Positions 12,747 through 64,000 of a stretch of 64,000 nucleotides of DNA are shown in pieces (the first letter of the stretch is position 1; the number at the start of each line of letters is the position of its first letter). The position numbers and the translations under genes were made by a program. The notes under the pieces are model-generated. The model was not told the origin of the DNA. It did no database searches and saw only the letters and a program-made list of their open reading frames with translations. This DNA comes from Takakia lepidozioides (Eukaryota; Plantae; Bryophyta). The DNA lies in contig CM060732.1 of NCBI GenBank assembly GCA_030704615.1, forward strand, positions 75,826,001-75,890,000, given 5' to 3'.

Positions 12747-20481
<7,735 letters not shown>

Positions 20482-21405: not shown

Positions 21406-22788
21406 TTCTAGCAATGACCGAAGGTCGGAAGCTAGTTTAGCGTAGAGCAGATATAGGGTGCCATAGTGCCTCGCCATCTTCGCCATGTCATCGTCACCGC
21501 GTCATCATCGCCAAGTCATCGTCGCCGCGTCATCATCACCACGTCATCGTCACCGCGTCATCATCGCCACATCATCGTCACCAGGTCATCGTCGTCAATA
21601 TTTTTGGGATATGCCCGGACTGCCCAAAATGTTTTATTGGTCGTAGCAGGCCCTCGGGACCTACCCGCACTGCCCGAAATGTTTATGAGCGAATGCAGCG
21701 GGAAAGTCTTGATGATCGCAGGGATTTCTCCATCCTGCAAATGTGGGCTCTAGGCTCCTGTTAGTACCATGATTTGGTATTCTTCCTGATGTTTACAAGG
21801 TTCTTGGGAGAGTCAGCTTGGTCTTAGCAGACCGTGTTTCAATCTCTGCCTGCTCAGCTGCACCGTGGTTGATCACTTGCTCAAGTGCTTGAATGAAGAG
21901 GTGGGATTCCTGAAGTAATAAGTGGACTTTCTTATGAAGTCTGCTTTTCTTCGAAATTTGAATTGCATCTGCCAAGGACACAATAATCTAATCACATAAG
22001 GAGGCAGCAGGCCCTTTGTCTGTCAGTAACAGTTGATGCAAATCTGAAATCTGGGTTATTGGATTACATAGGGCAAGAGAAAAAGAAATGTTCTGTCTCA
22101 ATTTCTAGCAGTGTGCAAACTTGATGAAACCCTCTCCTCACTCGTTGAGTAATATGAGTTGTCATGGCAGGCCACATATCTGTCACACATGTATATAAAC
22201 ATCAGGACTGCCTTATCAGCCTGTCCCCGATTCATCAGGATAAACTCAGGAGGTGGAATAGTAGCAGAATTGTGTTGAGAGTGTGTGGTTGAAGAGAAAA
22301 GAGCGTAGCCTCTCAAACAGCAGATGGTAAGCTTGTGTCAGCTAATCTGTATATTACAAAGTGCTCACTGGTAGACAGTGGTTGGCAAGACTTTCCTTCA
22401 TAAATACAATTAGTATGGGTGTTCCAGATATCATGTAGTAAGCCTTGCAAACCAAATGCAATTTTTATGCAACTTTGTTTTCAAAAAAGGAAAAGGGGGG
22501 GAAGCCCTTGAGAGCTTTATTGGGATTATTGATGGGGAAAAAATGTAATATATGTTTTAATAAAACTTGAACATTCACAATCCAAAATTGCAAATAAATA
22601 AATAAATAAATAAAATTGCATCATGCATCAGAACACAATGCAGTCCATCTTTTCATAAGACTTGAATAGACCCCATCAACAAATTAACAATTCATCCCGT
22701 GCCGTGGGGACCCATCCTATTTTTGTACCAATTGAATGTAGTTCTCAGAATCCGTCGCTAGTAGTGCGGAGCAACGCGAAGCCCTAGT
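21406..22788 (+). mobile_element. Non-autonomous Helentron/Helitron2-like element A (~1.4 kb)
   Basis: 5' end TT-CTAGCAATGACCGAAGGTCGGAAGCTAG hairpin followed by a CATCATCGTC-type microsatellite. 3' end CCGTCGCTAG-TAGTGCGGAGCAACGCGAAGCC-CTAG-TTT. Both ends match element B; T-rich insertion site, no TSD. Confidence 0.7.
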
Positions 22789-25700
22789 TTTTTTTTATAA
22801 CAATTCTAGCGACGACCTAAGGTCGAAAGCTAGTTTAGCGTAGAGCGGGAATAGGGTGCCTTAGTGCCACATCATCGTCGCCACATTTCGTAGACATGTC
22901 ATCGTAGCCATGTCAACGTCGTCGTCAAAAATTTTATATCTGCCTGGACTGCCCGCCCGAAAATCCCAAAGCGCCAAGTTTTTTCGGAACTTGCCCGGAT
23001 TGCCCGATTCTTGAAGTTCTTGAACTGCAGGAGCTCTGCGTTTTCCGCCATCGTTCACGTTGCAAGCTGCAAGCACTCAACAGTCTCGTTGCTCATTGCA
23101 AACCGTGGCTTTTCCCTCAACGATCTTTGATCACGTGGAATATAATGTTGGCAGGATTTACCGAGCATGGGATGCTTTGGAGACCTATGAGCAAATGATG
23201 CGCGAAGGGGTGAAACCCAACCACATCACGTAACCACATCACGTTTGTTTGTGTTTTTGCAATGCGTGTGCAAGCCTGAGAGCCCTGGAAAAGGGGAAAG
23301 AGGTCGAATTTTCGAGCACAAACGTCTACCTTGGAGCACGGAGCAGAGCTGGCATGAATTTTTTAAACATCCTTCACGATGGGGGGACAACCACAATCAC
23401 AAGGTGTGACTTTTGCTTAATGTACCATGTGAAGAAGTTTTTCCATCGTGTAGATGCTCAACGATCTTTGATCACGTGGAATATAATGTTGGTTGAACCC
23501 TCCTTGGGTGAAAGCGGAACTGGCGACCTTTATACCTTGTCAAACATATTCTGCTTATGATTCTACTGTTGATGTACACCTTGGCGCTCAATGTCAAGAA
23601 TCCAAAAGGTATTGTCTTTGTGATTTCCAACTAAAACAGATGGAATTGCTACAAAATGTTTTCAAAACATTTTTAAGAAACCTGCTCTAGAGATCATTCA
23701 TTTGAGTATTTGAGTATTTTGTCAGAGATTGGCGACAACAGTACTTTGGAGTCATGCAGGCTAGCAGGGTTGGATCAGGCTCAATTGTTTGTTGGACATC
23801 TGACTGAAAGAGGGGTAGGACCTTCACTATCACCACTGCTTTGGAAAGAGGACCAAGGGAGGAAGTTAACAAGGGCTTTCCGGGCACTTGTGGGTATGTA
23901 AGGACCCTGTGTAAGGCAGGACAATTGAAAGAGGCGCTGCACATTTTGCACCAACAAGGCATTGTGGCCAACTCAAATACTTATATCTGTCTCTTGCAGG
24001 AGTGCATCAACCTGAAAAAAACTAGAAGAGGGAAAGCAGGTGCATGCCCATATTATCCAAAGCCAACCATCTTTCTACTCAACAACGTTATCAACATGTA
24101 CATCAAGTGCGGGAGCCTGGTGGACGCACGCCAAGTATTCCATCAAATCATATATGGACGAAGATGATGGCAGGTTGTGTCAAGCATGGACATGTTGAGG
24201 AGGCTCTCAAAATCTATGAGCAATTGCGACACGAAGGCGTGACACCAAACAGGGTCACATTCATTTGCGTCCTCAATGGTTGTGCCAGCGTAGGAGCCCT
24301 GGAAAGGGGCAAAGAGGTTCATGCTGATATCCTTAAAGCTGAAATTGCATCTGAATCATTTTGGAGAATACCCTTGTTGACATGTATGGAGCATGAACGA
24401 TGCACATCAAGTGTTTGATAATACGGCTGAACGGAATGTGGTGTCATGGAGTGCGATCATTGCTGGATGTGCCCAGCATGGTCATGGTATTGAGGCCCTG
24501 CATCTCTTTGAATGCATGCAACAGTAGGGCATGCAGCCAAACAGTATCACTTTTATATCTCTTCTCTCTGTGTGTATTCATGTGGGCCTAGTGGATGAAG
24601 GCCTTCACTACGGTTGTCTGTCTAGACTTGCTTAAGTGCATCAAGATGAAAGGTCTGGAAGCTGGAAAGCAGGTGCACACTCACATTCTCCAAAGTGGAT
24701 TCACGCCAAGGATGCGAAGGGAGTTTTCAACACTATGGCTGAACAAGATGTTGTGTCGTGGCACGCGATGCACAACAGGGACGTGGGATGGTGGCTTTGG
24801 AGACCTATGATCAAATGATGGGGGAAGGGGTGAATCCAAACCACATCACGTTTGTGCGCATTTGCAAGCCTGGCAGCCCTGGAAAAGGGCAAAGAGGTGC
24901 ATGGTTGCATCGCGAAGCTGGAATTGTACCAGATGTCATTCTGAACAATACCCTCGTGGACATGTATGCCAAATGTAGAAGGCATTTCAGCAGATTCAGA
25001 TACGTTTGTCTGTCTCTTGCTTAAGTGCATCAAGATGAAAGGTCTGGAAGCTGGAAAGCAGGTGCACACTACATTATTCAAAGTGGATTTACGCCAAGTG
25101 TTTTTCTCCTCAACACCCTTGTCAACATGTCAAACCTGGGAGCTCTGGAAAAGGGGAAAGAGGTCCATGGTGACATTGTCAAAGCTGGAATTGTACCAGA
25201 TGTCATTCTGAACACTGCCTTGGTGGACATGTATGCCAAATGTGGGTGCATTAAGGTTGCGAAGGGAGTTTTCAACACTATGGCTGAACGAGATGTGGTG
25301 TCATGGAAGACGATGCTTGCAGGGTATGCACGACAAGGACGTGGTATGAAGGCTTTGGAGACCTATGATCAAATGATGGGGGAAGGGGTGAAGCCCGACC
25401 ACAACACATTTGTGTGCATTTGCAATGCGTGTGCAAGCCTAGCAGCTCGGGAAAAGGGCGAAGAGGTCCATGGCGACATTGTCAGAGCTGCAATTGTACC
25501 AAGTGTCCTTTTGAACAATATCCTCGTGGACATGTATGAAGCACTACAACAGATTGCGGCATTTACGACTCTGTGTTATGACTGCAAATGCAGTTATGAA
25601 AGCCATTTACGACTTCATGACTCTGCAGTCGTAAAACCTTAGTCAGTTGTGGCATGGCAGATATGACTCGCCAGCCTGGCTGTGACGTGGCGCCTGAGCA

Positions 25701-25972
25701 GCTGTGGGGGTAGTCATACACGCTGGCTTTACTGAATGACTGAACGGGTCCATGTCAGCCGATGTGTAAGAGAGACACGTGCTCTCTACAGAACACGCCA
25801 CGTGCCAGACTGCGACGCCATCCGACTGCAGAGGAGGGAATCAGACGTCAGCATGTGTCGCATCGTGATTTTGACACGTGGTTCCTCGTATCAATTGACA
25901 CGCGTCGCTGTGGGGGGGGGGGGGGGTTTGGGGATTTAATTTATTGTTATTACAATTACTATAATAATAATA

Positions 25973-26004
<32 letters not shown>

Positions 26005-27189
26005 TTTTGACCAACATGGGACAGTGGCACATTATTAAATAACGAATTTTTGAAATTATATTCTTAGATAAAATATTTATTCGCTCATATACCAAAACAC
26101 ACCCTTTCAGGGAAGGAAAGTTTGCCTTAGTGCCTATGCTGAATTGCGTCTGCTACTGTTACCTGTTTATGGATACTTTTTTATTGTCACTTTGGCAGTA
26201 TCATGTCAAAGTCACTCCAAACTATCTACCATCTACCCATGACCATCTACCCATGCAGGTTTCTTGTAGCTATCATTCCACAGGGAATCATCGGTAATCT
26301 GGAGCTTGAAATCCGGCTTTCTTGGATGATCTGGACCCACACTTCTATCCCTACTCCTTCAGCTATCCATGCCTCTGCACAAATCATGCATATATCCTTG
26401 CATTGCTGTTAGCAACTGACAATGACAGCCTACATTTGTTCCAGCAAACACCCAACTCAACTTACCACACTAGTTCATATTCTCAATTGCATTGCTGCTC
26501 TTTGTAATCCAACAGACATTTACCTTTTTGCCTCGGTTGTCCCACCATTGACTGGGGTCAGAAAAATATTCATTCCACAGCTTCCCCTCATCTCCGTTAA
26601 CTGTTTTTCGATACTTTCCTGTTGTCACATTGACAATATCATGTCAAAGTCACTCCAAACTAGATTCACTCAACCAGCTAATTTGCAGACATTGAAATTT
26701 AGGGCCGGTTCTGATAAGAGGGAAAAACAGGGTGAAATGTGTTGAAGAAGGTGCGTTTATTAGCAGTGCTTGATTTTATCAATTGTGCCGCTACTCCTGC
26801 GGCTTCCAGTTCACCATCTACCCATGCAGGTTTCTTGTAGCTAAATCCACAGGTAATCATAGGTAATCATGTGCTTGAAATCTGGCCCTCTTGGATGAAT
26901 CTGGACCCATACTCTATCCCTGCTCTTTCAGCTATCACTGCTTCTGCACAAATCATGCATACTTCCTTGCCTTGCAGCTGATAATGACAACCTAGATTTG
27001 TTCTAGGAAACAACCAACTCAGCTTATCACACTAGTTCCTATGTTGAATTGCGTCTGCCCTCTATAATCTAATAGGCATTAACCTTTTTCCCTCGGTTGT
27101 CCCACCATTCCACAACTTCTCCTCATCTCTGTGACCTGTTTCTGGATACTTTCTTGTTGTCACATTGGCATCATGTCAAAGTTCAGATC

Positions 27190-28195
27190 GACATCTAGTA
27201 CAATTCCAGCTTGGACGATGTTACCACGAACCTCTTTGCTATTTTGCAGGGCTGCCAGGCTTGCACACATGTTGCAAATGTAACAAACGCGATGTGGTTG
27301 CGCTGCAGTATCCCTTCCCACACCACTTGCTCATAGACCTCTCCAAAGGGCCTCCATGCCGCGCCGCTGTTGTGCATATCCTAGGATCATCATCCTCCAT
27401 GCACCCCAATTTGGCATACAAGTCCACAAAGATATAGTTCAGAACAACATTTGTTTAATTTCAGCTTGGACGATGTCATCACAAACCCCGTCTTCACTCA
27501 TTGCCTACTCTAGTTAAGTGCAATTATGGGCTAGGCTGGTACTACATCTCATTCAGCCATATTATCAAAACAGCCATGTATCCTTGTAGTTGCATCCTGC
27601 AACCTTGGCATACATGTCCACTACGACAACATTCAGAATCACATCAGATACAATACCAGCTTTGACAATATCACCGTGGACCTTTGTACCCTTTTTCAGG
27701 GCTGCCATGCGTGCATTTGACATACATATCCACCTAGGCAGTGTTTAAAGTGACATCTAGTGGTACAATTCCAGATTTGATAATGGACCTTTGCGTCCTT
27801 TCCAGGGCTACCAGGCTCGCATTTGACATACATGTACACCAGGGGAATGTTCAGAATGATATCAGGTACAATTCCAGCTTTGATGATGTCACCATGAACC
27901 TCTTGGCCCCTTCCCAGGGCTGTTAGGCTCGCATATGCATATTAACAACACAAATGACATGACTGGTTTGGCTTCATCCTTTCCCACATCATTTGTTCTT
28001 AGGTTTCCAAAGCCTTACTCCCACACCTATGCTACACACACTTACAATCATGGCAGTCCACAACACCAACATCTCATTTAGCCATGTTGTCGAACTCTCT
28101 CCTTTGCATCAGGCTTGCTGCACACCACATTTGGCATACATGTCCACTAGGCAGTCGAATGACAACTAGTACGATTTCAGCTTTGACGATGGCAC
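27190..28195 (-). pseudogene. Captured, decayed PLS-PPR fragments inside CACTA copy 1
   Basis: Minus-strand remnants such as VDLYAKLGCMED, KAEIVLVVI...DMYAKCG, and (on the + strand) TGGCATACATGTCCAC repeats. Confidence 0.8.
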
Positions 28196-28529
28196 ATGGC
28201 CTAAAACACGGCCTGCTAAGACCAAGCTTACTCTCCCAAGAACCTTGAAATATCAGGAAGAATACCAAATCATGGTACTAACAAGAGCCAACAGCCCACA
28301 TTTGCAGGATGGACAAACTTCTTCACATCGTACATTAAGGAAAAGCCACACCTTGCCATTGCGGTTGTCGCACCATCGTGAAGGATCTTTAGGAATCTCA
28401 TGCCAACTCTGCTCCGTGCTGCAAATGAAGGGCCGAGTATGATGAGAGGGCAAAACAGGCTGAAATAGGTGCCCTCACCACATTGTCCTCGACCTTGTGT
28501 CATGACCCATGGAGGATTTACTCTTTTAT

Positions 28530-28960
28530 TACAGGAAAGCAGTTCAATTCCCTCGATTCATATCCTCCATATTGTCTCAAAAGCATGTTGGTTTTTGAAC
28601 AAATACACTGTCAAACAAGAGTTTTATGTTGAAATACTCTTTTGTTATGGCCAAACAATTCAAATCCCTCAGTTCATATCCCTCCAAAAACACTTTTATA
28701 CAAGAGTTCCGTGTTGAGGAAATAATGCAGATTTTCGAACAAAATCCCTGTCAAACAAGAGTATTGTGTTGAAAAACTCTTGTGCTAAGGCAAAGGAGTT
28801 CAAATCCCTTAGTTCATATCCCTCCATATTGTTTCAAAAGCCTGGAGGGTTTTCTAACAAATATGACAAGTGTTTCGTGTTGAGAAACTCTTTTGTCACG
28901 GCAAAAAGTTCAAATCTCTCAGTTCATATCTCTCCAAATTTGTTCAAGAGGATGAAGTTT
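28530..28960. repeat. Imperfect tandem repeat inside CACTA copy 1
   Basis: About four copies of TTCAAATCCCTCAGTTCATATC(C)CTCCA, each with a TGTTGAAA..CTCTT motif. Confidence 0.7.
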
Positions 28961-29639
28961 TATCATTGTCCGACTAGAGTTTGACTGACCATGAACCCAA
29001 GAGGACCTCTTCAGTGTGCTGCTTGTTTCTGTAGTCAGGTAATGTCGGATTGGTCAGTGAGAACCACCACGGTGCAGCTGAGTGGGCAGAGATTGAAACA
29101 CGGCCTGCTAAGACCAAGCTAACTCGAACCTTGTAAACATCAGGAAGAATACCAAATCATGGTACTAACAGGAGCCAACAACCCACATTTGCAGGATGGA
29201 CAAACTTCTTCACATCGTACATTAAGAAAAAGCCACACCTTGCGATTGCGGTTGTCCCACCATCGTGAAGGATCTTTTAGAAACTCATGCCAGCTCTGCT
29301 CCGTGCTGTAAAATCAGGGCCGAGCGGGTAGAGATTGAAACACGGTCTGCTAAGACGAAGCTGACTCTCCCAAGAACGGCAGGCTCCCAGCCGAAACCTC
29401 CTCGCACACATACCCTAGCGTTTCTAGGGTTGCTTGCTCCAAATGCGAAGGTTGATCCAACTGCGGGCCTCCCATGCATGTTTGCCCTCTCTCCCGCTCG
29501 CTCGCTCCAAGTCCCAACCCTCTCTCTCTCTTCCCTCCCGCTCGCTCTAATCTGTTCACGCTACCGTGATGGGCAACTTTTTAAGTTTTTTAATCTTTTT
29601 GTAAACCCTAAAAGTCCCTCTTTGATTTTTTTTCTTTTT

Positions 29640-29830
29640 TTTTTTTTCTTAAAGGAAACCACATGCCCTTGAGGAGGGGGGAAAATTCACCCGCCTTCAT
29701 TTATGGGCCATAAGACGTACAGGACGATCAACGCCCAGACATACCGTCACGAACAATCCCACACACGGGATAAGGCAGCAGGTTTGAACCCCAAACCACC
29801 GGGGCGACACACTGTGCACTTACCAGCCGA
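29640..29830 (-). mobile_element. 5'-truncated tRNA-derived SINE inside CACTA copy 1
   Basis: Reverse copy of the SINE at 34221-34445, with B box GGTTCAAACC and a poly-T run on +. Confidence 0.75.
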
Positions 29831-32789
29831 TGTGTGTGTTTTTTTTTAAAAAATTGCATTTAAAAAAAAATGATTCTAGTGGTCAGAGTCTCCATTTTTT
29901 CAAAATATAAATACTCATATATTATATATATAACCAGAAAAGCATGTGTCGACATGTGCAGTCATGTAGTGATTTATCCATGTGATGATCTGGCAGAATG
30001 CATTAGAGTGAGAGTCATGAAGTCATATGTCTTTCTAGCAATATACACACGTCATTCCAGTGTAGCCATGACCGTGACTGGTAGTCATATCTGCCATGCC
30101 AATATTCGTGGTCAAACATATTTGACTTGTGTTGCGCAGAGTCCGGAGCCATGCAGTCGCATATACGCCTTCCCCAGACCTGCATTATGACTTCAAAAAC
30201 ATTTTACGACTGCAAATGGCATTTCTGCCACAAATCTGTCATGACTGCGCACCCATGGGAGTCATAAAAGCCGCAATCTGTTGTAGTGAAGGGAGTGTTC
30301 GACAGTATGGTTGAATGAGATGTGGTGTCGTGGAGTGCGATGATTGCAGGATATGCACAGCAAGGGCATGGGATGGAGGCTTTGGAGACCTCTTAGCAAA
30401 TGATGTGCGAAGGGGTGAAGCCCAACCGCATAATGTTTGTTTGCATTGGCAATGCGTGTGCAAGACTGGCAGCCCTGGAAAGGTACAAAGAGGTCCATGG
30501 TGACATCGTCAAATCTGGAATTGTACCCGATGTCATTATGGACACTGTGAGTGCATCGAGGATGCAAATGGAGTGTTCGACAGTATGGCTGAATGAGATG
30601 TGGTGTCGTGGAGTGCGATGATTGCAGGATATGCACAGCAAGGATGCGGGATGGAGGCTTATGAGCAATTGATGTGCGAAGGGGTGAAGCCCAACCGCAA
30701 CACATTTGTTTGTGTTTGCAATGCGTGTGCAAGCCTAGGAGCCTGGAAAAGGGGAAAGAGGTCCATGGTGACATCGTCAAAGCTGGATTTGTACCAGATG
30801 TCATCCTGAACACTGTCCTGGTGGACATGTATGCCAAATGTGGGTGCATGAAGGATGCGAAGGGAGTTTTCAAATGGCTGAACAAGATGTGGTGTCGTGG
30901 AACGCGATGCTTCCAGGGTATGCACAGCAGGGGCGTGGGATGGAGGCTTTGGAGACCTATGAGCAAATGATGGGGGAAGGGGTGAAGCCCGACCACATCA
31001 CGCTTGTGTGCGTTTGCAATGCGTGTGCAAGCCTGGCAGCCCTAGAAAAGGGCAAAGAGGTGCATGGTTGCATCGCCAAAGCTGGAACTGTACCAGGTGT
31101 GATCCTGAACACTGCCCTGGTGGACATGTATGCCAAATGTGGGAGCATTGAGGATGCAGAGGGAGTGTTCAACAATATGACTGAACGAGATTTATTGTCG
31201 TGGAACGTGATGCTTGCAGGATATGCACAGCAGGACGTGGGATGGAGGACTTGGAGACCTATGAGCAAATGATGGGGGAAGGAGTGAAGCGCGACCACAT
31301 CATGTTTGTGTGCGTTTGCAGTGCGTGTGCAAGCCTGGCAGCCCTGGAAAAAGGCAAAGAGGAGCATGGTTGCATCGCCAAAGCTGGAATTGTACCAGAT
31401 GTGATTCTGGACAATAGCCTCGTGGACATGTATGCCAAATGTGGGAGCATTGAGGATGCGGAGGGAGTGTTCAACAATATGGCTGAACGAGATTTGGTGT
31501 CATGGAACGCCATGCTGGCAGGATATGCACAGCAGGGCGTGGGATGGAGGACTTGGAGACCTATGAGCAAATGATGGCGGAAGGGGTGAAGCGCAACAAC
31601 ATCAAGTTTGTGTGCGTTTGCAGTGCTTGTGCAAGCCTGGCAGCCCTGGAAAAGGGTGAAGAGGTGCATGGTGACATCCCCAAAGTTGGAATTGTATCAA
31701 CCGTCATTCTAGACACTGCCCTGGTGGACATGTATGCGAAATGTGGGTGCATTGAGGATGCAAAGGGAGTATTTGACAATGTAACTGAACGAAATGTGGT
31801 GTCGTGGAATGCGATGATCGCAGGATCCCCAACATGGTTGTCATAGGGAGGTCCTGCAACTATTTGAAGGAATGTAAAAGAACGGCTTGAAGCCGGACAG
31901 TATCACCTTTATCTGTGTTCTATCTGCATGTAGCCACACTGGCCTACTGAATGAAGGAAGACGCTACTTTCATTCCCTGAGTCAAGATCATGGTGTTACT
32001 CCGACAGTAAAGCACTTTGGCTGCATGATGGACCTTCTTGGATGTGCGGGACAACTGGATGAGGCAGTGGACCTGATTAATAAAATGCCAATCAATCCAT
32101 AGGTTGTGGTGCGGAAGGCCTTGCTTGGTGCCTGCAGAATCCATGGCAATGTGGAGATGGCTAAACTTGCAGCAACATCTATCCTCAAGTGGGATGAACA
32201 GGATGCCGCGACCTATGTGTTGCTATCAAACATCTATGCTGCAGCTGGCAGGTGGGATGATACTGCAAAGGTGAGAAAAATGATGAAGGTTAGAGGGGTT
32301 AGAAAGGAGCCAGGTCGCTTCGGCATTGAGGTTGGCAACAGGGTGCACACCTTCGTTGTAGATGACAAGTTGCATCCCAAAATTAAGGAAATCCATGTTG
32401 ACCTGAGAAGATTGTCTGGGCAGATGAAGGAGGTGGGGTATGTGCCTGATACACGCTTTGTATTGCATGATGTGGGGGAGGAGGAAAAGAAATTTTCTCT
32501 TTGCCACCACAGCGAGAAGCTGGCCATTGGGTTTTGGGTTGATCAGCACAACCCCTACGATGCCTCCTCCTCCACTGAATTTACAATTGCCATCAAACAT
32601 CTATGCTGCAGCTGGCAGGTGGGATCCATCTGAGCAGCAAAATGTTCTCTCTGCATTTTACTAGCGCCTAACAACAAGCTGTATGTCCCATCACATTTCA
32701 CATGAGCTTGTTCTTCTTTGTACACCAATTTGACACATAGAATAGTTTATATAACTACCTGTTATGTGCTACCTCTCTTTCTCAAAAAG

Positions 32790-33320
32790 ATGCAGAGAGG
32801 AAAGGGAGATTGTCAATGCCTAATGTGAGGGTGGCCTGAAGACAATATCCATTTTCTGCTACAATGTCCGGGGGTATTCTCATCAGGCTGAGCCTGAAGC
32901 ACTGACCCTCTCTGAACTTGTTTCCAGTCTGTGACATAGGAGAGGCCATCATGGATAACCTCAAGGGTTTATCCACCCTCGGCACTAGACTGAAATCTAA
33001 ACTCGGGGCAGGAAGCCTACCTTTGAACAACAAACAGATGCAGTGAGGAAAGAGGGATTGCAATTACCCATTGTGTGGGCAACCTGAAGACACAGGGATA
33101 GCATTGTGGCCGTGCCCCCAGTCTGGGCGGAACAAGAGCAAACCTTTGTGAGGGGCTCACTCCAGTAGCAATATCCATCAACATGACTCGAATATTCATC
33201 AATGTGAGTAATACGAGCACACTTAAAACGGAAGTTGGGGGCTTAGGAAATAAGGTCTGCGTCACTGATAATGCTGCCTTGTCTGTACTTCTTAGTTCTT
33301 ACGGATCAAAGTCCTTCAGA
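32790..33320 (-). mobile_element. LINE C-terminal fragment, same family as 58600-59030
   Basis: DNA similar to 58700-59000, encoding a decayed TLGTRL.FRLGAGSLPLN segment. Confidence 0.65.
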
Positions 33321-35505: not shown

Positions 35506-35541
<36 letters not shown>

Positions 35542-50955: not shown

Positions 50956-52949
50956 TCAAAAGAACATGTGGTAATTTGACAGGCATTCACCTCCTGACTT
51001 GGCTATTACCAACCCATCCTGCCATTGGCAAGAGATTCCACAGAAACTGATAGTTGTCTGTTTGACTATATAACTATGTATCTCTTGCTTTCTTACAGCT
51101 TGTACTGTGACACGCATAATGCTCTTGTTGTGTTGAATCATTTCACGCCTTCAGGTTTCATAACATTACCGTCTTTCTTTATCAGACATGTGCACCAAGA
51201 CAGAATCTCACCAAAAGATTGTTGGTGTTCAACAGTACCATACATGAAGATAACTAGCACCAAAAGGGAATATGAAGCTTATTCTGCTCTCCACCGGTAT
51301 TAACTTGCACCAGGACTTTCAATGGCTGTCTTCCAGTCCACCCATGGCCCGCTGTAAATGGCTTGCAACCTACAGATTTTCAAGAGAGCTGATTACCATG
51401 AAAATTTCAAAACTGGCTTTACAAACCTAATAATTCAACCATAATCAGCATTCAAGCTAAGGAAGCTTTACAAGCATCGTGTTGCGAGTAAAGCCTTGGC
51501 AATGTCACCAGGAAATCCCTGGCTGAATGGATGACACTGAAATAATGGAGCTTGAAATCCGGCCCTCTTGGACGAATTTGGGCCCACACTCTATCCCTGC
51601 TCCTTCAGCTATCTATGCCTCTGCACAAAATCCTTCAGCTATCTATGCATACATCCTTGCCTTCCTGCTAGCAGCTGACAATGACAGCCTAGAATTGTTC
51701 CAGCAAACACCCCCAACCCTACTTATCAACGAGCAATGAGCTAACTTACAAAATTCAATATGCATCTCAGGACGTCTGATGAGAGGGCAAAACATGCTGA
51801 AATAGGTCAAAGAAGAAGGTGCCCTCACCACACTGTCCTTGACCTTGTGTCATGACCCATGGAGGATTTGACCTTGTGTGTGATGCTTGTGTCTGTAGTC
51901 AGGTAATGTCGGATTGGTCAGTGAGAACCTGCACCACGGTGCAGCAGAGCAGGCAGACGTTGAAACACGGTCTGCTAAGACCAAGCTGACTCTCCCAAGA
52001 ACCTTGTAAACATCAGGAAGAATATCAAATCATGGTACTAACAGGAGCCAACAACCCACATTTGCAGGATGGACAAAATTCTGCACATCGTACATTAAAA
52101 AAAAACCACACCTTGCGATTGCGGTCGCACCCTCGTGAAGGATCTTAAAAAAACTCATGCCAGCTCTGCTCCATGATTCAAATTCAGGGCCGAGTCTGAT
52201 GAGAGGGAAAAATAGGCTGAAATAGGTCGAAGAAGAACGTGCCCTCACCACATTGTCCTCGACCTTGTGTCATGACCCATGGAGGATTTGACTGAACATG
52301 AACCCAAGATGACCTCTAGTGTGTGCTGCTTGTGTCTGTAGTTAGGTAATGTCGGATTGGTCAGTGAGGACCACCACGGTGCAGCTGAGTGGGCAGAGAT
52401 TGAAACACGGCCTACTAAGACCAAGCTAACTCTCCCAAGAACCTTGTAAACATCAGGAAGAATACCAAATCATGGTACTAACAGGAGAGCCAACCCACAT
52501 TTGCAGGATTGACAAACTTCTTCACATCGTACATTAAGAAAAAGCCACACCTTGCGATTGCGGTTGTCCCACCATCGTGAAGGATCTTTTAGAAACTCAT
52601 GCCAGCTCTGCTCCGTGCTGTAAAATCAGGGCCGAGCGGGTAGAGATTGAAACACGGCCTGCTAAGACGAAGCTGACTCTCCCAAGAACGGCGGGCTCCC
52701 AGCCGAAACCTCCTCGCACACATACCCTAGCGTTTCTAGGGTTGCTTGCTCCAGATGCGAAGGTTGATCCAACTGCGGGCCTCCCATGCATGTTTGCCCT
52801 CTCTCCCGCTCGCTCGCTCTAAGTCCCAACCCTCTCTCTCTCTCCCTCCCTCCCGCTCGCTCTAACTGTTCACGCTACCGTGATGGGCAACTTTTTAAGT
52901 TTTTTAACCTTTTTGTAAACCCTTAAAGCCCCTTTTTGATTTTTTTTTC

Positions 52950-53146
52950 TTTTTTCTTTTTTTCTTAAAGGAAACCACAAGCCCTTGAGGAGGGGGAAAA
53001 TTCACCCGCCTTCATTTATGGGCCATAAGACCTACAGGACGATCAACGTCAAGACATACCGTCTCGAACAATCCCACACACGGGATAAGGGCAGCGGGTT
53101 TGAACCCCAAACCACAAGGGCGACACACTGTGCACTTACCAGCCGA
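52950..53146 (-). mobile_element. 5'-truncated SINE inside CACTA copy 2, at the same position as in copy 1
   Basis: Near-identical to 29640-29830. Confidence 0.75.
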
Positions 53147-53759
53147 TGTGATTTTTTTTAAATCTTTGTTTTTTTTGGGTTTTTGTTAATTCATTCTAGT
53201 TGGTAAGAGTCTCTGTTTTTTTAAGATATAAATACTCATATATTAAAAATATATAACCAGAAAAGCATGTGTCGACACGTGTAGTCATGTAGTGATTCAT
53301 CCATGTGATGATCTGGCATAATGCATTAGAGTGAGAGTCATGAAGTCATATGTCTGTCTTGCAATATGCACACGTCATTCCAGTGTAGCCATGACCGTGA
53401 CTGGTAGTCATATCTGCCATGCCAATATTCGTGGTCAAACATGTTTGACCTGTGTTGCGCAGAGTCCGAAGCCATGCAGTCGCATATACGCCTTCTCCAG
53501 ACCTGCATTATGACTTCAAAAGCATTTTACGACTGCAAATGGCATTTCTGCCACAAATCTGTCATGATTGCGCACCCATGGGAGTCATAAAAGCCGCAAT
53601 CTGTTGTAGTGCCTTGAATTTTATGATGGTAGTTTGGTAAGCTCTACCCTGCCTGTTTCAGGCTTGATTTTGGTATGTTATGGATCATAATGAGGTATTT
53701 TTGCAAAACCTAGCATAAGCCTCTTGGAAAACGGTGATGGTAAGCTTTAAATGGAATCC

Positions 53760-54730
53760 TGCCACTGATTTTGGCTTTGTCATGACACCAGGCTTGTGAC
53801 CTGCAATTAAATGATTCATTGGCCAAGAGGGCCGGATCTCGGGTATTCAAGATGTTTATTTGTACATGTCTTGAATCTGTAAATCTGCCAGGCTGCCTGG
53901 ATGCACGTCTCAGATCTGATAAATTGCAGGCTGGTCCATTTAACCATGATGCCTTGCTTGGTAAATGATTCATTGGCCATGAGGGCCGGATCTCGGATGC
54001 TCAAGAGGCTTATGGCTACATGTCTTGAATATGTAATTTGCCATGATGCATGGATGCATGTCTCAGATCTGATAAATTGCAGGCTGGTCCATTTAACCAT
54101 GATACCTTGCTTGGTGCATGTCCTAGTGTACTTAAAAGTTGGTATGGTAGGATGCAGTAACATGTTTTGTCATGCCCATGACTTTTGTTTGAAGACATGT
54201 CTTTGAATCTGCAAAATGACAGGCTGATTTTCACATACCCTTGATGCCTTGTAAGTTACATGTCTTGGGGTAATTACAAAAGGTATGGAATCTGTTTTAT
54301 CATGCCCAAGTGGTTTGCTTGGAGGCATGTCTTGATTCTGAAACATTGCAGGCTGGTCCTTGTGCTTTGCTTGATGCATGACCTTCTGTAATAAAAAGCT
54401 GATAAGGTAAGGTGCTGCAACCTGTTTTGTCATGCCCAAGATGTATGTTTAAAGACATGTCTTGAAAATGTAATAGGGCAGGCTGAACCATGGTGCCTTG
54501 CCCCTTGCATGACCTCAACAATTTGTTATCCTTGAATACATGGCATGCTGGTAAGGTAAGGTGCAACAACCTGTTTTGTCATGCCCAAGACGTTTGTTTG
54601 AAGACATGTCTTGTATATGTTTTTGGGCAGGCTGACCCAAGGTGCCTTGCCTCTTGCATGACTGCGGCAATATGTTTATCATGTCCCTTACATGAACAAA
54701 CCCTGCCCTCCCACCCTGTTTTATCATGAA
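53760..54730. repeat. Imperfect tandem repeats of ~130-150 bp
   Basis: Repeated AATGATTCATTGGCCA.GAGGGCCGGATCTCGG...TCTCAGATCTGATAAATTGCAGGCTGGTCC and CTGTTTTGTCATGCCCAAGA units. Confidence 0.75.
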
Positions 54731-55580: not shown

Positions 55581-56529
55581 ATTGATTACCCCCAATTATG
55601 GTTGGTTAAGGTGTGAAACCCTAACCCCTACCCTTAAACCTACCGTTTAACCTAGCTACGGATAAAATCCGTCGGGTTTTAAAGGATGTGGTGGTGATTA
55701 TTCATCCTGCACGGATGAAAAATCGGGCAAGAGCCCTAGGATGTCTCTCCCGCCGTCAGAAGCACGAGTAATGCTTTTGAGCTCGCGAGAAGAGCGTTTT
55801 GGCGTCTGCGTTAAATTGCTGCTACCCTGTTTGCTGCATCGTACCCGTGCTGGGCGATCTCCTGGGGATGCGCAATGGCGGCGTTTTTTTTTTTTCTTAC
55901 AGGTGGGAGACAATGCTATGAATGCATCGTGTCTTTCCCTCCTCTGGCTTTTAATTTTTGCAACGGCGCTTGTGTGGGGAAGTAGCTCTCTCTCCCTTCT
56001 TAAACCTAGCAAGTGCGCTTGTATGCTTCACTTCTCTTTTGCTTTGCTGGAGGTGGCTTGTTGGTGGTGATCTGGTGCACAGTTCTCTTCCCCAATCGCT
56101 CAAGGTGGTTTTGGTGATTAGGGTTCCTTTTGTTTTATGTCTTTCTCTCTTGCTTTTGAGGTTCTTAGTTGACATCGATGACAAGAGTTTTGGCCTTAAA
56201 GAGGAGGTGAGTTTTATGGTAAGGCCTCAGTGGCTGTCAGGTTCTAAGGAAGAGGAGGCCCTGATTTTGAAGATGGCAGCCTGATAAGGCACTGACATGC
56301 CTCTTTCAGACTTGAATCTGGTGTGGAATGAAGCATAGTGAGGTTTATTTGCAAACCCTGGCATAAACCTCCTGGAAAACAGTGTTGGTAAACTCTACTG
56401 GACCTTTGTCAAAGATTATTAGCCTTGTATTGCCATCAGGCCAGTTACCTGCAATGTATGGATTATTTTTTGGCCAAGAGGGCTTGGTCCCGGGCACTCA
56501 AGATGTTTGTGTGGTTGCATGACTCCAAT

Positions 56530-57345
56530 GGTGGCTGCATGACTCCAGCAGTATCTGCATGAACGCTGGGGTTTTTTCCTTTGTACCTCTCCAGGGAGTG
56601 CCATCTGGTCTTTTGAGAGTTTGACTGGACTGCATGAAGTTGTACAAAATGTCATCGACATGCGGCTCATACGGGGGGTTGATGAAACAACCTTGGTCAG
56701 AAATTTCAAAGTTGCGGAGAGAGGATGGTGTCTTTGAGGTGCGAATCCTCCGCAGGCAGATCGCCTCGAACGTCCTCGTCTGCCAAAGACTGCAGGTTAG
56801 GATGGTAAACACCAACTATAGTGGAAGTTTGTACATTGGCTATTCAAAACACAGACATACAACAATCTGTTTTGTCACGAATCTGTCATGATCGGTGTCG
56901 ATCATTACAGATTGTGCGCAAAACTTCAAACCCAGAGGACTTCAGGTATGATGCCAAGGCCCGACGAGTATCTTTGTCACATGATTGAAAAAGCAGAAGT
57001 GTCCCTGCATCAGAGAGGAAATTATTGCAAAACCCGAACACCCAACTCCAGTAGTTGTCATTGAATTTGTTCCAGCTTGGCGTCTTGCCCTTCGGAAGAA
57101 CTTCTGGCACAGCCTATCCGTCCGGGATGTCGAGAATGACCATGTCAGCCGCAAATGATTTCTGCACACCGCACATGAAGGTGGGACCAATGCTCACCTG
57201 CAACAGACATGTCCAATTTTAGAATGAAGACTATAATGTTTTCAAAGAACCAAACTTTAACACTGCAAATGACACTTACAGATGCAAAGGAAAAATCAAA
57301 TTCTCACCAGATTAAGGAATGAGATCATGTTGTCCCAGGTAGGCG
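56530..57345 (-). pseudogene. Intron-containing beta-class DNA amino-methyltransferase (N6-A/N4-C)-like gene fragment
   Basis: Spliced translation ...NMISFLNL|VSIGPTF...ADMVILDIPDG*AVP...PSWN...FCNNFLSDAGTLLLF...|...PWRGTKEKTPAFMQILLESCS. Motif IV-like DIPD precedes motif X-like EK.P..M..LLE. In-frame TAG at 57114-57116; motif I not found. Confidence 0.6.
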
Positions 57346-58317
57346 AAGGCCCTGGGGGGTGCACTCCTCATTAAATGTACCAGCCACGTGCGTGCACAGG
57401 AGGGGGTATTTTAAACCCCCCCATGTACAACATTATACATACAGAGGGGGGTTTAAAACACCTTAAATATAATTTTATAGGAGGGGGCTGTTGAGTTTTA
57501 AGGGGTAGTGTAGTGGTAAGAGCGGTGTATAAGCCGCGATGCACCGCGGGATCATCCTTTTGTTTGTTTGTTTGCTTGTTTTTGTTTTGTTTTTTTTTTT
57601 CTATCCGCGATCTTTCTCCCCTTCCCTCCCGCGGCTTTCTCTTTTCCCTCTCCTCCTCTTATCTCCTCTCCACTCCTCTCCGGCGTTCGCCTTCTCTTCC
57701 GCGGGCTTTCTCTTTTCCCTCCTCTCCTCTCCCCTCCTCTCCATAGGGCATGGTATTCTTCCTGATGTTTACAAGGTTTAGGGGAGAGTGAGCTTGGTCT
57801 TAGCAGGCCATTTTGTGGTGGTTTCTCAAAGACCAATCCGACATTACCTGACTACAGACACCAGCAACACACCGAAGCGATCCTTTTGGGTTGATGGGAG
57901 GGCAATCCTCCATGGGTCATGACACAAGGTCAAGAACAATGTGGTGAGGGCACCTTCTTCTTTGACCTATTTCAGCCTGTCTTGCCCTCTCATCAGAGTC
58001 GGCCCTGAATTTGCAGCACTGAGCAGACCTGGCATGAGTTTTTAGAAGATTGACAATGGTGGGACAACTGCAATCGCAAGGTGTGGCGTTTTCTTAAGGT
58101 ACGATGTGAAGATTTTTTTCCATCCTGCTATTGCGGGCTCTTGCCTCCTATTAGTACCTGATTTGGTATTCTTCCAAATGTTTATAAGGTTCTTGGGAGA
58201 GTCAGCTTGGTCTTAGCAGGCCGTGCTCAGCTGCACCGTGGTGGTTCTCACTGACCAATCCGTCGTTACCTGACTACAGACACAAGTAGGCACACACAAG
58301 AGGTCCTCTTTTGAGTC

Positions 58318-59920
58318 AGTCCAAACCATGAAGTGGTCAGAGGTACCAATATCAGTTCTGTCGATCAACACATTGGCACACTGGGGGAACAAATTTTTGT
58401 CCATTATGATATAGTCCACAATGGAACGTTCCCCAGTTTGGGATTTCTCACGAGTCCACTGCACTTGGTCACCTGCAGTTGAAGTCCTTGCCCTTTGGTT
58501 GTCTTCCTAGAGCGCCCCATTGAATTACCTATGTCTAAGACCGCTCTCCAGCCAGTCAAGGGACGAACTTCTTTGAGATTGAATTGATGTGGGACTCTAT
58601 TAGAAGCACTTTTGGTCATTGCAACCTTCAACGTACACCTGTTATCAATGAGAGAACCCCGGACAGTGTATCAGAAAATGAATACTGTCTTCAAATTGCC
58701 CACACAATGGGAAGTGCACTCTCCCTTTCCTCTCTGCTTCTGTTTGATGTTCAAAGGTAGGCTTCCTGCCCTGAGTTTAAATTTCAGTCTAGTGCCGAGA
58801 GTGGGTGGACCCTTGAGGTCATCCATGATGTCCTCCCCCGTGTCACTGACTGGAAACAAGTTCAGGGAAGTTTTCTGCCTAACTTCATTTTCATCAGACA
58901 ATCTCATGGCAATAGACATGGCTTTGGACACTACAGCCTCTAAGTCGGATTTATCCAGCAGGGTCAAGACTTGCGGATCCAAGTCCAGGTCCTTGAGAAT
59001 CTCTTTCACTCTGGTGTTGGGAAAACACCTTTTGATCTCAGTCCAAACCAGGAAGTGGTCAGAGGGACCAATATCAGTTTTGTCGATCAACACATTGGCA
59101 CACTGGGGAAACAAATTTTTGTCCATTATGATATAGTCCACAATGGAACGTTCCCCAGTTTGGGATTTCTCACGAGTCCACTGCACTTGGTCACCTCTTG
59201 TCCTGTTATTCAAGGTCAAAAGATGAAGCTCTTCCAGACAGTTAATTAACTGTCTGCCATTAGAATTCAACTCGTCCTCACCAGAAGGCCCAGTGATATC
59301 GTCCTGATGGAGCCCTTTGCCCACCCGGGCATTGAAGTCACCCAATAGCACCACCTGACCTTTGGCAAGGAACGAAGCACAGTCCAGTTTTACATCTTCG
59401 AAGGCTTTGTCTGCGTCAGCACTAAGGGTCCCCTCTGTGGGCATGTAAACACAACCCACAAAGAGGTCCTTCGTACTCAAGCTGCCCTTCAGATGCAGTT
59501 TTAGCCAGATACTATGCTCGTACCTCAAACCCTTGTTGATAATTTCACAATTGTCCAACAAGAAATCACGGACAAAGAATCCAGCCCCTTTTTTACTGCG
59601 TTTGGCAGAGGCTGCCTTGAGAGTACACATCTTACCTGCCCATTTATAACCATTGACATCTCCAACCAGTTTATCCGACGTTTCCCAAGTTTCTGCCCAG
59701 CACAGATATGTATATCATTAGTCCGAAGAACTTGTCCAACTTCGAGTTGTTTCCTTTGGTTGGTCAACCCTGAGAAGTTGAAAGTGGCCAGCCGCAAGCC
59801 AGCCCTTTGCATGTGAATTGTTTGTCGTCTAGGTAGCTTGTGATTGCTCCTGGACGGCCAACCGTTCTGCAAAGGGGGGACAGTTACCCCATGGATTCAT
59901 AGCATCAAACCGATTAGAAA
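58318..59920 (-). mobile_element. LINE derivative: APE endonuclease joined to the C-terminal domain, RT domain missing
   Basis: RLATFNFSGL, GAGFFVRD, VGCVYMP, LLGDFNARVG, NSNGRQL, SIVDYI and SDHFLV, then in the same frame GTRLKFKLRAGSLPLN. 58318-58475 duplicates 59040-59195. Confidence 0.85.
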
Positions 59921-59934
59921 CTCTCAAGTTGAAG

Positions 59935-60901
59935 TCCTTGCACACTCACATTATCCAAAGTGGATTCACGCCAAATGTTTTTCTACTCAACACCCTTGTC
60001 AACCTGTATGTTATGTGCGGGAGCATCATTGATGCTCACCAAGTGTTCAACAGAATGCCTCAACGATCTTTGATCACGTGGAATATAATGTTGGCAGGAT
60101 GCAATGCGTGTCCAAGCCTGCGAGCTCTGGAAAAGGGGAAAGAGGTCCATGGTGACATTGTCAAAGTTGGAATTGTACCAGATGTCATTCTGAACACTCC
60201 CCTGGTGGACATGTATGCCAAATGTGGGCATTAAGGATGCGAAGGGAGTTTCCATGGCTGAACGAGATGTGGTGTCGTGGAGTGCGATGCTTGCAGGGTA
60301 TGCACAGCAGACACGTGGTATGGAGGCTTTGGAGACCTATGATCAAATGATGGGGGAAGGGGTGAAGCCCGACCACATTACATTTGTGTACATTTGCAAG
60401 CCTGTCAGCTCTGGAAAAGGGCAAAGAGGTCCATGGCGACATTGTCAGATTTGCAATTGTATCAAATGTCATTCTAAACAATACCCTCGTGGACATGTAT
60501 GAAGGGAGTGTTCAACGGTATGGCTGAACGAGATGTGCTATCATGGAGTGCGATGATTGTAGGATATGCACAGCAAGGGCGCGAGATGGAGGCTTTGGAG
60601 ACCTATGAGCAAATGATGTGCAAAGGGGTGAAGCCCGCGCTTTGCATTGCATGATGTTGAGGAAGAGCTTAAAGAATCGTCTCTTTGCCACCACAATGAG
60701 AAGCTGGCCATTGTTTTTGGGCTTATCAACACACCCTATGGGATGTCTTTGAGGATCACCAGGAATCTTCGGATGTGTGGTGATTGCCACACAGCCACCA
60801 AATTCATCTCAAAGATAGCTAAGCAAGAGATTGTTGTACGGGATGCAAACCGCTTTCACCACTTCCAAAATGGTGTTTGTTCTTGTGGGGAGTATTGGTG
60901 A
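59935..60901 (+). pseudogene. Deleted PLS-PPR gene fused to the C-terminal half of a DYW deaminase
   Basis: PPR remnants, then [30 protein letters not shown]...[18 protein letters not shown]...[20 protein letters not shown]. Confidence 0.92.
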
Positions 60902-61594
60902 AATGAAATGCTTGTCACCTAATTGAATGTATTGAACTCTATCAGCTTCAGGTTGGACTCCAACAGTGGCAGCAAAGGTGCACGAAATCTCTTTTTGGAG
61001 ATGAATTCTCAAGAGTAGGTTTTGAACATAATTGGACCTTGCAAAGGTTGAAACTGTAGAACAAGTTTAGAAAGTGTCCTAGTTGATGAACAGAGGTGCA
61101 GTGACTAGGTCTTGATGGTCTTCAAGAGGATCACTCTCTGATGAAAATACCCAGGACTGTATATCAGAAAATGGAATCTTTCTTCGGGCCTCTTGCACAT
61201 CGGGCATTGACAATGTCCCTTTCCTCTCTGCATCTGAATATTGTTCAAAGTGAGATTCCACAGCAAGTTTTATTGAGGGCAAACAATTTTTTAAATTAAT
61301 TTATTAGATTTTATTCGATTTTAAATGAATAAACTTGATATAATATAAAAACATACATATACATATTTGAGGGTATCTTTTAATTATTGAAAAGGGAAAT
61401 ATACATACATAAGGGGGTACTTTTAAAAAATTACAAATTTCTATATATTTACAGGAGGGGGTTTTATAATCTTCAAAATGTATGTACAGAGGGGGTATAA
61501 ATGATCCAAGGACCCGTATACATGGGTTTTTTTTATTAGGCGGCGAACGCACGTGATACGGACATTTTATAAAGAGTGCACCCCCCAGGGCGCA

Positions 61595-62240
61595 GGCGCC
61601 CCAGTGTATCCTCTCTTTCGACTCTACATCATCGCCAGCCAACCCTCATTGACAATCTTAATCTCGCCTGCCAAATCAGCACGGGAAGGGTATGGCCTGG
61701 CATCGAACACGCACTGAATTGTGCAGGTATACCTTCCAGCAATGAAGTCATTCTCACTATCATTTTCCTTCTCCCTCTCCATTTCTTTCTCCTTCCCCTT
61801 GTCCTTTTCCTTTTCCTTGTCCTTGGGACTTGTCTTTGTCCTTTGGCTTTGCTGGTGACATGGCTATGACATCAGGAGCCTTGTCTTTTGGTTTGCACCC
61901 CGCCTTCTTGCCCTTCTGCGTCGTTTCCTGAGCATCAGGCTCCTTGGCGGCCAATATTGCTATGTTTCTTTGGTACTCCTCGTCATTCAGAGGCGCCAGC
62001 ATCTCAACATTATTGTTCAAATATTTCATGTGCTGCTCTTGAAAGGTCGTGTGCTCAGGTGGGCAGTTTAGGTACCAACCACAATCTCTGAAGTGAGAAA
62101 GACTCCAGTCCTTCAATATCCCTGCAGTGTACATGGTTGGATCGTTTGCAAGGTCCGACCCCATGTCAAGATAGTCTGGAATACCGCTGAGGTGATTTCT
62201 ATCCATAAGCACATATTTCGTGCACCTGTGAAACACGAGA
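61595..62240 (-). pseudogene. Decayed exon of a transposon-associated protein, possibly the upstream part of the methyltransferase-like gene
   Basis: 158-aa ORF (LANDPTMYTAGILKDWSLSHFRDCGWYLNCPPEH, then a K/G-rich linker), on the same strand as and upstream of 56530-57345, abutting the other TIR. Confidence 0.4.
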
Positions 62241-62469
62241 CAAAACCCAACCCACCAAAGCGCGAAGTGAGTAAGATGCCAGTAGCACAGAATGAAAAAA
62301 ACGAGGAAGGAAATGGAGCTCAGAACAGCTCTAAGGAGCTCTCAGGAGCTCACAACAGCTCTGGATGTGAATGTCATCAACGACATTCACAAAATTCCAT
62401 TCAAGGACACTGCAAACACACTCTAAGTTCCTAATCCAGGTGAATGCAATCTCTAGCTTTGGAAGGACA

Positions 62470-64000
62470 CACTACAACAAAAAGCGGCTTTTACGTCTCT
62501 GTGTTATGACTGCAAATGCAGTCATGGAAGCCATTTACGACTTCCTGACTCTGAAGACGTAAAGACCTAGTCAGTTGTGACATGGCAGATATGACTCTCC
62601 AGGCTGGCTGTGACGTGGCGCCTAAGCAGCTGTGGGGGTAGTCATACACGCTGGCTTTACTGAATGACTGAACGGACAATGTAATCCATGTCAGCGGCTG
62701 TGCAAGAGTGGCACGTGCTCGATACATGAAATGACACGTGGCAGAGTGTTCGCTCTCCATGACTGCCAACTATGACTACGGGAGTGCTAATCTGATTGCA
62801 ACACGTGGCGCATTGTAATTTTTACACGTGGTCCCTCAGCAGATTGACATGTGTCATGATTGGTGTTTTTTGGGTGTATTGCTATTTTTTTTACATATTT
62901 GTATTTCTGCCACATGGTGTAGTACTATTGGAGAGTGAAAATATATGTAGTCATTATTATGACTATGATAGTAGTCATGTACATGTCTATTACAACAATG
63001 AAATATAATATATAATACAAAGAGAACAAGGCAGCAAGACATAACTGCAACAAGCTGAGCAAAACCAAGAGATTGTATACATTCTTTATTTACCAATCTA
63101 TTTATCATTATCATTTTGGTCGCGATCTAAAAATACATAAAATAGTCACATGTTCTCATGTGAATTATATTGTCTAACTATAACACTTTGAAAAGTGTTC
63201 ACCCATAATCTTCTAACTACTCATGCTATTCCATCAATCTGCAACCTATCAAAAACTAAAGCTTGCATGGCTTTAAGAATTACTACAGCAATGACATCTA
63301 TTTGTTTTCCAAGTTCTTGCATAAGATGCACCAACCAACATTGCATTGTGAGACACTCACTCGCTATACTCCAAAGCGTCCAGGGAAGGTCACTGAGCAA
63401 CCTGCCAAGGCGGAAATAATTAAGAGAATTGTCTAATACCATATATGAAAAACCAATGCCAGTGTTATTTATGGTAACTTCTATCCCATGGACTCGTAAA
63501 CAAACCAAAGCAAAAAGGTTGGTGTGTGTTGGCAAAGTCGTCAGATACTTCACAAAGAAACATGCACTAAAAATGAGAGCCAGGAGGATAGGAAGGTCAC
63601 TCACGTTTATACAAAGACGTCTTGCCCATTGCCCAACACCCTGCGTCACCCACACTCTATCTCTACTCCTTCAGCTATCCATGCCTCTGCACAAAATCAA
63701 GCATTCAACCTTGTCTTGCTACTAGCAACTGACAATGACAGCCTACATTTGTTCTAGGAAACACCCAACTCAGCATAGCACACTAGTTCCTATGTTGAAT
63801 TGCGTCTGCTACTCTTTGAAATGTAGCAGGCATTCACCTTTCTGCCCCGGTTGACCCATCAGTGACAAGGCTCAGATAAGTATTCATTCCACAACTTCTC
63901 CTCATCTCTGTTACCTGTTTTTGACACTTTCCTGTTGTCACATTGGCAGTATCATGTCAAAGTCACTCCAAACTAGATTCACTCAACCAGCTAACTTGTA
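62470..64000. mobile_element. CACTA copy 3, left part; runs off the window
   Basis: Starts CACTACAACAAAAAGCGGCTTTTACG and is colinear with 48586-50105. Predicted TSD is ACA. Confidence 0.92.

Follow-up and report, generated by a model that had tools for sequence, protein, structure and literature searches.

Broken PDF-PPR-DYW editing-gene modules inside several types of non-autonomous DNA transposon at one locus of the moss Takakia lepidozioides

The window analysed here, a stretch of 64,000 nucleotides (64 kb) from the moss Takakia lepidozioides (contig CM060732.1, positions 75,826,001 to 75,890,000), is plant nuclear DNA of 45% GC in which genes are interspersed with transposons. All the DNA in it that belongs to PLS-class PPR editing genes, with their P-L-S motif triplets and their E, E+ and DYW domains, lies within the termini of non-autonomous DNA transposons, and one damaged gene lineage is found in two unrelated types of carrier. 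The best explanation, and in our judgement a probable one, is a pool of transposons that amplifies and shuffles dead modules of genes in which a PDF motif precedes the PPR array and the DYW domain.

Results

Editing-gene DNA lies within transposon termini

The window holds six non-autonomous elements (Table 1), namely two Helitron2 (HLE2)-like units, three CACTA copies and one unclassified element with terminal inverted repeats (TIRs), referred to below as the TIR element. CACTA-A is nested; the other five, which stand at top level, make up 23,571 nt or 36.8% of the window. PPR, E, E+ and DYW domains were recognised in the cargo with Pfam. Once the five top-level elements had been masked, scans of the 64-kb window with DNA profiles and tblastx found no PLS, E, DYW or PDF DNA and matched nothing but a P-class PPR gene, which looks intact, at about 7.7-10.8 kb. 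This confirms an earlier note on the same DNA, which had placed every PLS-PPR/DYW sequence of the window inside element termini; its placement of those termini also holds, as the TIRs and target-site duplications (TSDs) of CACTA-A and CACTA-B, the HLE2-like ends and the TIR block were all found again. The chance that five of five top-level clusters fall within 37% of the DNA is about 0.007, a figure that is weak alone, since the clusters are akin to one another and their limits were drawn post hoc, and one window is in any case weak proof of enrichment. None of the elements encodes a transposase: the CACTA copies contain no long open reading frame (ORF) and the HLE2-like units no RepHel ORF. 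The termini of these elements were absent from all 21 foreign loci, and a metagenome scan yielded distant plant DYW loci only.

One damaged allele in two types of carrier

The cargos of the large HLE2-like unit and of the TIR element represent one gene lineage that has diverged neutrally by about 11%. When CACTA-A is computationally removed from the alignment the two are 88.5% identical, and they have in common a 26-nt frameshift deletion in an S motif, which in the TIR cargo accompanies the empty-site allele of the CACTA-A insertion. A 43-nt piece of the HLE2-like unit (23115-23157) matches the TIR cargo exactly (60058-60100) and is missing from its proper place in the HLE2-like copy. The similarity is confined to the cargo and does not include the flanks. 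Setting the phylogeny of the cargo against its carriers, as the earlier note had proposed, gives a tree in which triplets pair across carrier boundaries (H2 with T2, 100/97; H1 with T1, 95/75; fragments under 55 codons left out). The two copies are separated by 29 non-synonymous and 9 synonymous differences, with an omega of about 1.2, the neutral expectation.

Each copy retains parts that are gone from the other; a longer ancestor outside the window therefore gave rise to both, and neither derives from the present form of the other. The order of events is the lesion, the split, separate deletions and then the insertion of CACTA-A. An 11-nt deletion common to two L motifs was rejected as a further lineage marker because microhomology makes it recur.

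The cargo is broken and its source was once functional

Each of the seven PPR cargo segments that we examined is broken. In a frame-aware alignment with an intact protein, the main gene of the large HLE2-like unit shows at least seven frameshifts and five stops, besides an insertion of 4.7 kb (an eighth frameshift call, at 32241, is an end effect). Other lesions amount to five frameshifts and one stop in paralog 1, about seven frameshifts and nine stops in CACTA-A and three frameshifts in the TIR copy, and in CACTA-B the five cargo motifs contain a stop and the ends of the gene are absent. The main gene retains E and E+, and its DYW domain ends after the HSE motif. The TIR copy has the C-terminal half of DYW, with HNE, CGDC and the C-terminus, and is without E, E+ and the start of DYW; a 2-kb deletion has brought this half, which has a stop immediately before it, up against a P motif. 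No open frame leads from the PPR array through E to DYW in any cargo of the window and, judged from the sequence, nothing in the window is predicted to make a working editing protein. Shuffling continued after the death of the gene, since a 1-nt deletion is common to triplets 6 and 7 and the start of the gene occurs twice (24609-24986 and 25001-25541).

The repeat array still bears the mark of a gene that once worked. The P-L-S triplets of the main gene recur with a period of 302 nt and are 79-91% alike (Tandem Repeats Finder, with Pfam, frame-aware alignment and translation for annotation). Neighbouring triplets of the array at 30.3-31.8 kb have an omega of about 0.58, a value as low as which was reached in none of 300 neutral simulations (P<0.005) and which lies close to the 0.46-0.51 of intact arrays of the lycophyte Diphasiastrum. 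Base-specifying positions are more variable than the rest of the array (0.63 vs 0.27, P=0.001). The low omega and the variable base-specifying positions together indicate that the source gene was once functional. The different target codes of the cargo are thus a legacy of a live gene and no sign that the elements made new specificities.

The shared blocks are PDF exons captured as genomic DNA

That the carriers share cargo blocks besides the PPR arrays had been seen before, and the sharing is real. The blocks are not other genes, a possibility that we rejected; they are the 5' PDF-motif exons and the intron of the same PDF-PPR-DYW family. That all the cargo is broken had gone unmentioned in the earlier note. 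A profile of the PDF motif, which is known from OSB single-strand-binding proteins (PMC6963530), matches the shared blocks in the large HLE2-like unit, in all three CACTA copies and in the TIR element, always in the same sense as the neighbouring PPR motifs, and the small HLE2-like unit holds the intron part of such a block. Two PDF subfamilies, X and Y, are present, and in both the motif is split by a phase-0 intron of 183-189 nt, of which donor and acceptor (GT..AG) are intact in the Y copies and the acceptor is mutated in most X copies. The small HLE2-like unit, CACTA-A, CACTA-B and the TIR element have intronic X blocks that are 84-96% alike.

Full-length relatives in Diphasiastrum start with the PDF motif, and two intact genes of that plant have the intron at the same codon and with the same donor as X. 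As the intron is retained at its ancestral site, the cargo was captured as genomic DNA and not by retrocopying. A retrocopy origin was rejected on this ground and also because no polyA follows the DYW stop codon at 60901, the single such stop in the cargo.

Structure of the carriers

CACTA-A and CACTA-B have perfect 3-bp TSDs that differ from each other (AAG vs CCT). Together with CACTA/CACTG-type TIRs, subterminal motifs (a 6-nt motif occurs 7-11 times per arm vs 1.4 times per kb in the window), host gene fragments inside and no transposase, these identify them as Pack-CACTA elements. Between A and B the right arm is 93% and the X and Y blocks are 85-96% alike, and the PPR pieces only about 70-76%; the shared PDF cargo therefore moved with the family, and the PPR part was replaced or captured separately. 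All three CACTA copies lie within 40 kb in the same orientation. The cargo of CACTA-A compared with the motifs of its host has an omega of about 0.9. We rejected the idea that this cargo is a copy of its own flanks, to which it is 64-86% identical, below the likeness of the flanks to each other.

Further repeats occur in and near the CACTA copies. A 220-nt SINE-like repeat (short interspersed nuclear element) with tRNA-like A and B boxes occurs in the right arms of CACTA-A (29629-29830) and CACTA-B (52939-53146) and, reversed, just beyond the 3' end of the large HLE2-like unit (34231-34453). Arrays of diverged repeats of about 140-150 nt stand at 28520-28980 and 53808-54676, and the far flank of CACTA-B (53611-53857) has a 74% copy at 56258-56508. 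The frames interrupted by CACTA-B have a SWIM-type zinc-finger pattern (Mutator-like, MULE-like) and are open on the minus strand (46900-48585) until the insertion.

The two HLE2-like units lie head-to-tail, 16 nt apart, each with a 12-nt subterminal inverted repeat and with a 33-nt 3' end that is identical between them. T|T insertion junctions occur at all four ends; no TSD and no empty site were seen. The 3' hairpin of the large unit is weak, with a 3-bp stem and a fold no better than that of shuffles (z 0.11). At the 5' ends (22804-22840 and 21406-21445) the units have a common small hairpin with different loops, again no better than shuffles (z about -0.9). The small unit also contains, at 21870-22330, exon-like cargo that ends in a donor site near 22328.

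The TIR element shows no TSD of 3, 8 or 9 bp; a 2-bp GC duplication or a blunt G|C insertion fits, and the host frame stays open. A superfamily name was rejected, the TSD being unclear, and the element was left unclassified. Its host (56530-62240, minus strand) is an intron-containing gene with a motif like that of DNA amino-methyltransferases (DIPxG near 57130) and with in-frame stops; Pfam gave no name to this host, whose upstream exon was also tried, or to the SWIM-like host of CACTA-B. The piece of a long interspersed nuclear element (LINE) in the TIR cargo (58308-59930, minus strand) encodes an endonuclease domain that runs straight into a C-terminal zinc-binding tail, in an ORF of 319 aa from which the reverse transcriptase is deleted, and occupies the expected place of the second intron of the PDF-PPR gene. 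Bits related to this LINE lie in both cargos, at 32782-33092 and 61138-61235.

Table 1. Transposons of the window and their cargo. Positions count from the first letter of the window.
Feature	Position	Strand	Description
Small HLE2-like non-autonomous element	21406-22787	+	5' arm 79% over 123 nt and 3' end 93% over 73 nt vs large unit; T|T junctions
PDF-exon intron piece in small HLE2-like unit	21725-21869		145 nt; 89-92% identical to CACTA copies
Large HLE2-like unit	22804-34192	+	11.4 kb; 12-nt subterminal inverted repeats (11/12); T|T sites; no TSD; no RepHel ORF
Scrambled cargo start in large unit	23115-23528	+	S/P/L fragment; PDF exon 1 and intron start (23331-23456); PDF second half (23484-23528)
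PLS-PPR paralog 1	23898-24610	+	Short, broken; about 68% identical to other cargo
Main PLS gene (paralog 2), 5' part	24609-25541	+	Stops at CACTA-A insertion; has shared 26-nt deletion
Pack-CACTA A	25542-30288	.	Nested in PPR cargo of large HLE2-like unit; TIRs 19/20 identical; TSD AAG both sides
CACTA-A cargo	26240-27182; 27181-28199; 28204-28519, 29014-29324	minus	PDF-Y exons/intron; degenerate PLS motifs; PDF-X blocks
Main PLS gene, 3' part	30289-32545	+	Five P-L-S triplets, P2-L2-S2, E, E+, DYW cut after HSE motif
LINE-like fragments in large unit	32782-33092	+	79-88% identical to LINE piece of TIR block
Pack-CACTA B	48586-53611	.	TIRs 19/20; TSD CCT; inserted into SWIM-type (MULE-like) reading frame
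CACTA-B cargo	49754-50438, 51546-51728; 50478-50958; 51774-52636	minus	PDF-Y; five PLS motifs; PDF-X
Unclassified TIR element	57349-61591	.	About 45-bp TIRs, first 18 nt identical; sits in methyltransferase-like gene
TIR cargo (internally deleted gene, in gene order)	57751-58310; 58308-59930; 59939-60637; 60638-60901		PDF-X exons; LINE endonuclease piece (minus); PLS; DYW C-terminal half
Empty-site allele of CACTA-A insertion, in TIR cargo	60490-60512	+	Single AAG; same 26-nt deletion (alignment)
CACTA C, left part	62470-64000	.	Runs off window; 94% identical to B over 1537 nt
PDF-Y block in CACTA C	63648-63998		97% identical to Y block of B

Outside the elements, the window contains an intact-looking P-class PPR gene (7749-10776), a PAT1 gene (39740-42711), an ABC-F-like gene (14000-17300) and a decayed LINE with a zf-RVT match (44200-46450). 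For the PAT1 exon at 41305-42708, identity is 79% with Sphagnum against 65% with Selaginella and about 58% with seed plants, which marks the DNA as that of an early-branching moss.

Discussion

Pack-CACTA elements, HLE2-like units and an unclassified Pack-TIR element probably form one pool of non-autonomous DNA transposons filled with genomic DNA of PDF-PPR-DYW editing genes, the host's largest gene family. A once functional gene gained a frameshift deletion, and the damaged copy ended up in two unrelated carrier types, where the copies drifted neutrally and lost different parts before the insertion of CACTA-A added more PDF and PPR pieces. Capture may have occurred when neighbouring TIR elements excised aberrantly, when a gap was repaired with template switching or through rolling-circle end bypass, routes that have already been published (PMC6379663, PMC13317346). 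Abundant PPR genes and PPR-filled elements could serve as frequent donors and harmless landing sites, a feedback that would lead to nesting and to exchange between carrier types. The net result would be transposon-driven amplification and shuffling of dead editing-gene modules, with transposases encoded elsewhere.

Several points weigh against this account. The large HLE2-like unit and the TIR element are present in one copy each in the window, neither with a clear TSD, so that we infer their movement with the cargo. The window holds no autonomous partner, and the omega estimates were obtained from 100-380 codons with multiple hits ignored. An alternative is passive co-location, in which common PPR pseudogenes were bracketed by chance, the HLE2-like 5' and 3' ends came from different insertions on either side of a resident pseudogene and the similar copies arose through ordinary segmental duplication. 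Takakia does have 2,016 PPR genes (PMC13386178), the rolling-circle ends of the window have no TSD, and the large unit is an 11-kb patchwork with LINE pieces, which occur in both copies. We nevertheless regard co-location as unlikely, given that no DNA of the family was found outside the elements and that the likeness of the two copies ends at the cargo rather than in the flanks. Moreover, the CACTA copies have their own TSDs and a common PDF cargo, and hence moved with it, and the small HLE2-like sibling has the same ends as the large unit and an intron piece 92% like that of a CACTA copy. Local tandem duplication at this one locus, which the earlier note had named as one finding that would undo its reading, could draw on the head-to-tail HLE2-like pair, the three CACTA copies of one orientation within 40 kb and the internal repeats of the cargo. 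It is largely refuted by the separate TSDs and fails to explain the copies, as the flanks also differ, cargo orientations are opposite, the copies stem from no fewer than two paralogous genes (about 68% alike) and include two PDF subfamilies, and the cargo of CACTA-A is less like its flanks than these are like each other; we find it hardly credible as a source of all copies.

A more ambitious possibility is that the elements are a working factory, dispersing and recombining P-L-S triplets that differ in their code residues and occasionally giving rise to intact, expressed editors or donating triplets to live genes by gene conversion. The TIR cargo keeps gene order, introns and DNA from the side of the untranslated region, triplets differ at code positions, and Takakia has fewer marks of retroposition than other PPR-rich plants (52% intron loss; PMC13386178), which leaves room for duplication at the DNA level. 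Set against this, all seven PPR cargo segments are broken, the lesions predate dispersal and divergence is neutral, and we consider such a factory distinctly improbable at this locus. In its broadest form the idea would have several class II superfamilies share a circulating PDF-PPR-DYW pool as a library of RNA-binding triplets, which might yield intact genes, or motifs altered by conversion, that have new target codes and, together with retroposition, might have driven the rise to about 2,000 PPR genes and heavy organelle editing; this strikes us as quite unlikely. The earlier note had proposed that nested Pack-type elements copy, shuffle and disperse editing modules and could so open a route to expansion of the family and to new specificities. 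Its proposal is partly supported: trafficking of dead modules stands for several types of DNA transposon, and because the cargo is broken and the cross-carrier copies are neutral, the creation of new working editors is unsupported here. For the present the cargo counts as amplified pseudogene DNA, and cargo of this kind can inflate PPR gene counts and the statistics of 'dispersed duplicates'.

Gene capture by Pack-type elements and Helitrons is already known, including a CACTA element with a PPR fragment in grapevine (PMC2528002). What is new at this locus is the presence of a lesion-marked allele across carrier types, a shared damaged allele being a clean marker of cargo passing between unrelated carriers, and the finding that the shared blocks are 5' PDF exons taken up at the DNA level. 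Our literature search found no paper describing a PDF-PPR fusion and none on PLS-DYW cargo in class II elements of mosses, whether or not several types share it. As in Pack-CACTA and other Pack-TYPE elements (Catoni 2019, PMC6379663; Gisby and Catoni 2022, PMC8903248), the CACTA copies combine CACTA-type TIRs, a 3-bp TSD and host gene pieces with the absence of transposase, and, as in Arabidopsis (PMC6379663), nearby members have the same orientation and variable cargo. Unlike these elements, which have so far been described in flowering plants (neither PMC6379663 nor PMC8903248 mentions mosses or PPR genes), those of Takakia carry almost a single gene family that is common to superfamilies. 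The grapevine family Cactavine-5 (PMC2528002) likewise contains part of a PPR gene, but this family, present in two copies, encodes a transposase and holds a single fragment, with no PLS-DYW arrays and no sharing across carrier types.

Non-autonomous HLE2 or Helentron elements, as described with HELIANO (PMC11417382), resemble our units: both have short subterminal inverted repeats (about 12 nt), insert at T|T sites, lie in tandem and capture genes. HLE2, which is known from Sphagnum, is defined by inverted repeats of about 12-16 nt near both ends and a stem-loop after the right repeat (PMC11417382), whereas the units of the window have a weak 3' stem-loop, no RepHel in the window and a near-whole editing gene as cargo. 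A likeness to the cargo itself is provided by PDF-PPR(-DYW) genes of Diphasiastrum complanatum (KAJ7517632.1, KAJ7568884.1), in which a PDF motif with the same phase-0 intron is followed by P-L-S triplets and E, at 66-70% DNA identity; those genes are intact where the window copies are fragments, and none of the window termini occurs in their 6-kb flanks. Finally, the retroposition model (PMC13386178) also describes dispersed PLS/DYW duplication near transposons, in Takakia, hornworts and lycophytes, and its authors noted that retroposition features are limited in Takakia. That model is based on intron loss, polyA tails and flanks of long terminal repeats, whereas the cargo of the window keeps its ancestral intron, shows no polyA and lies in class II carriers. 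PPR cargo that keeps its intron, carried by three types of class II element, offers a concrete candidate for a second route, beside retroposition, to the gain of editing factors in seedless plants.

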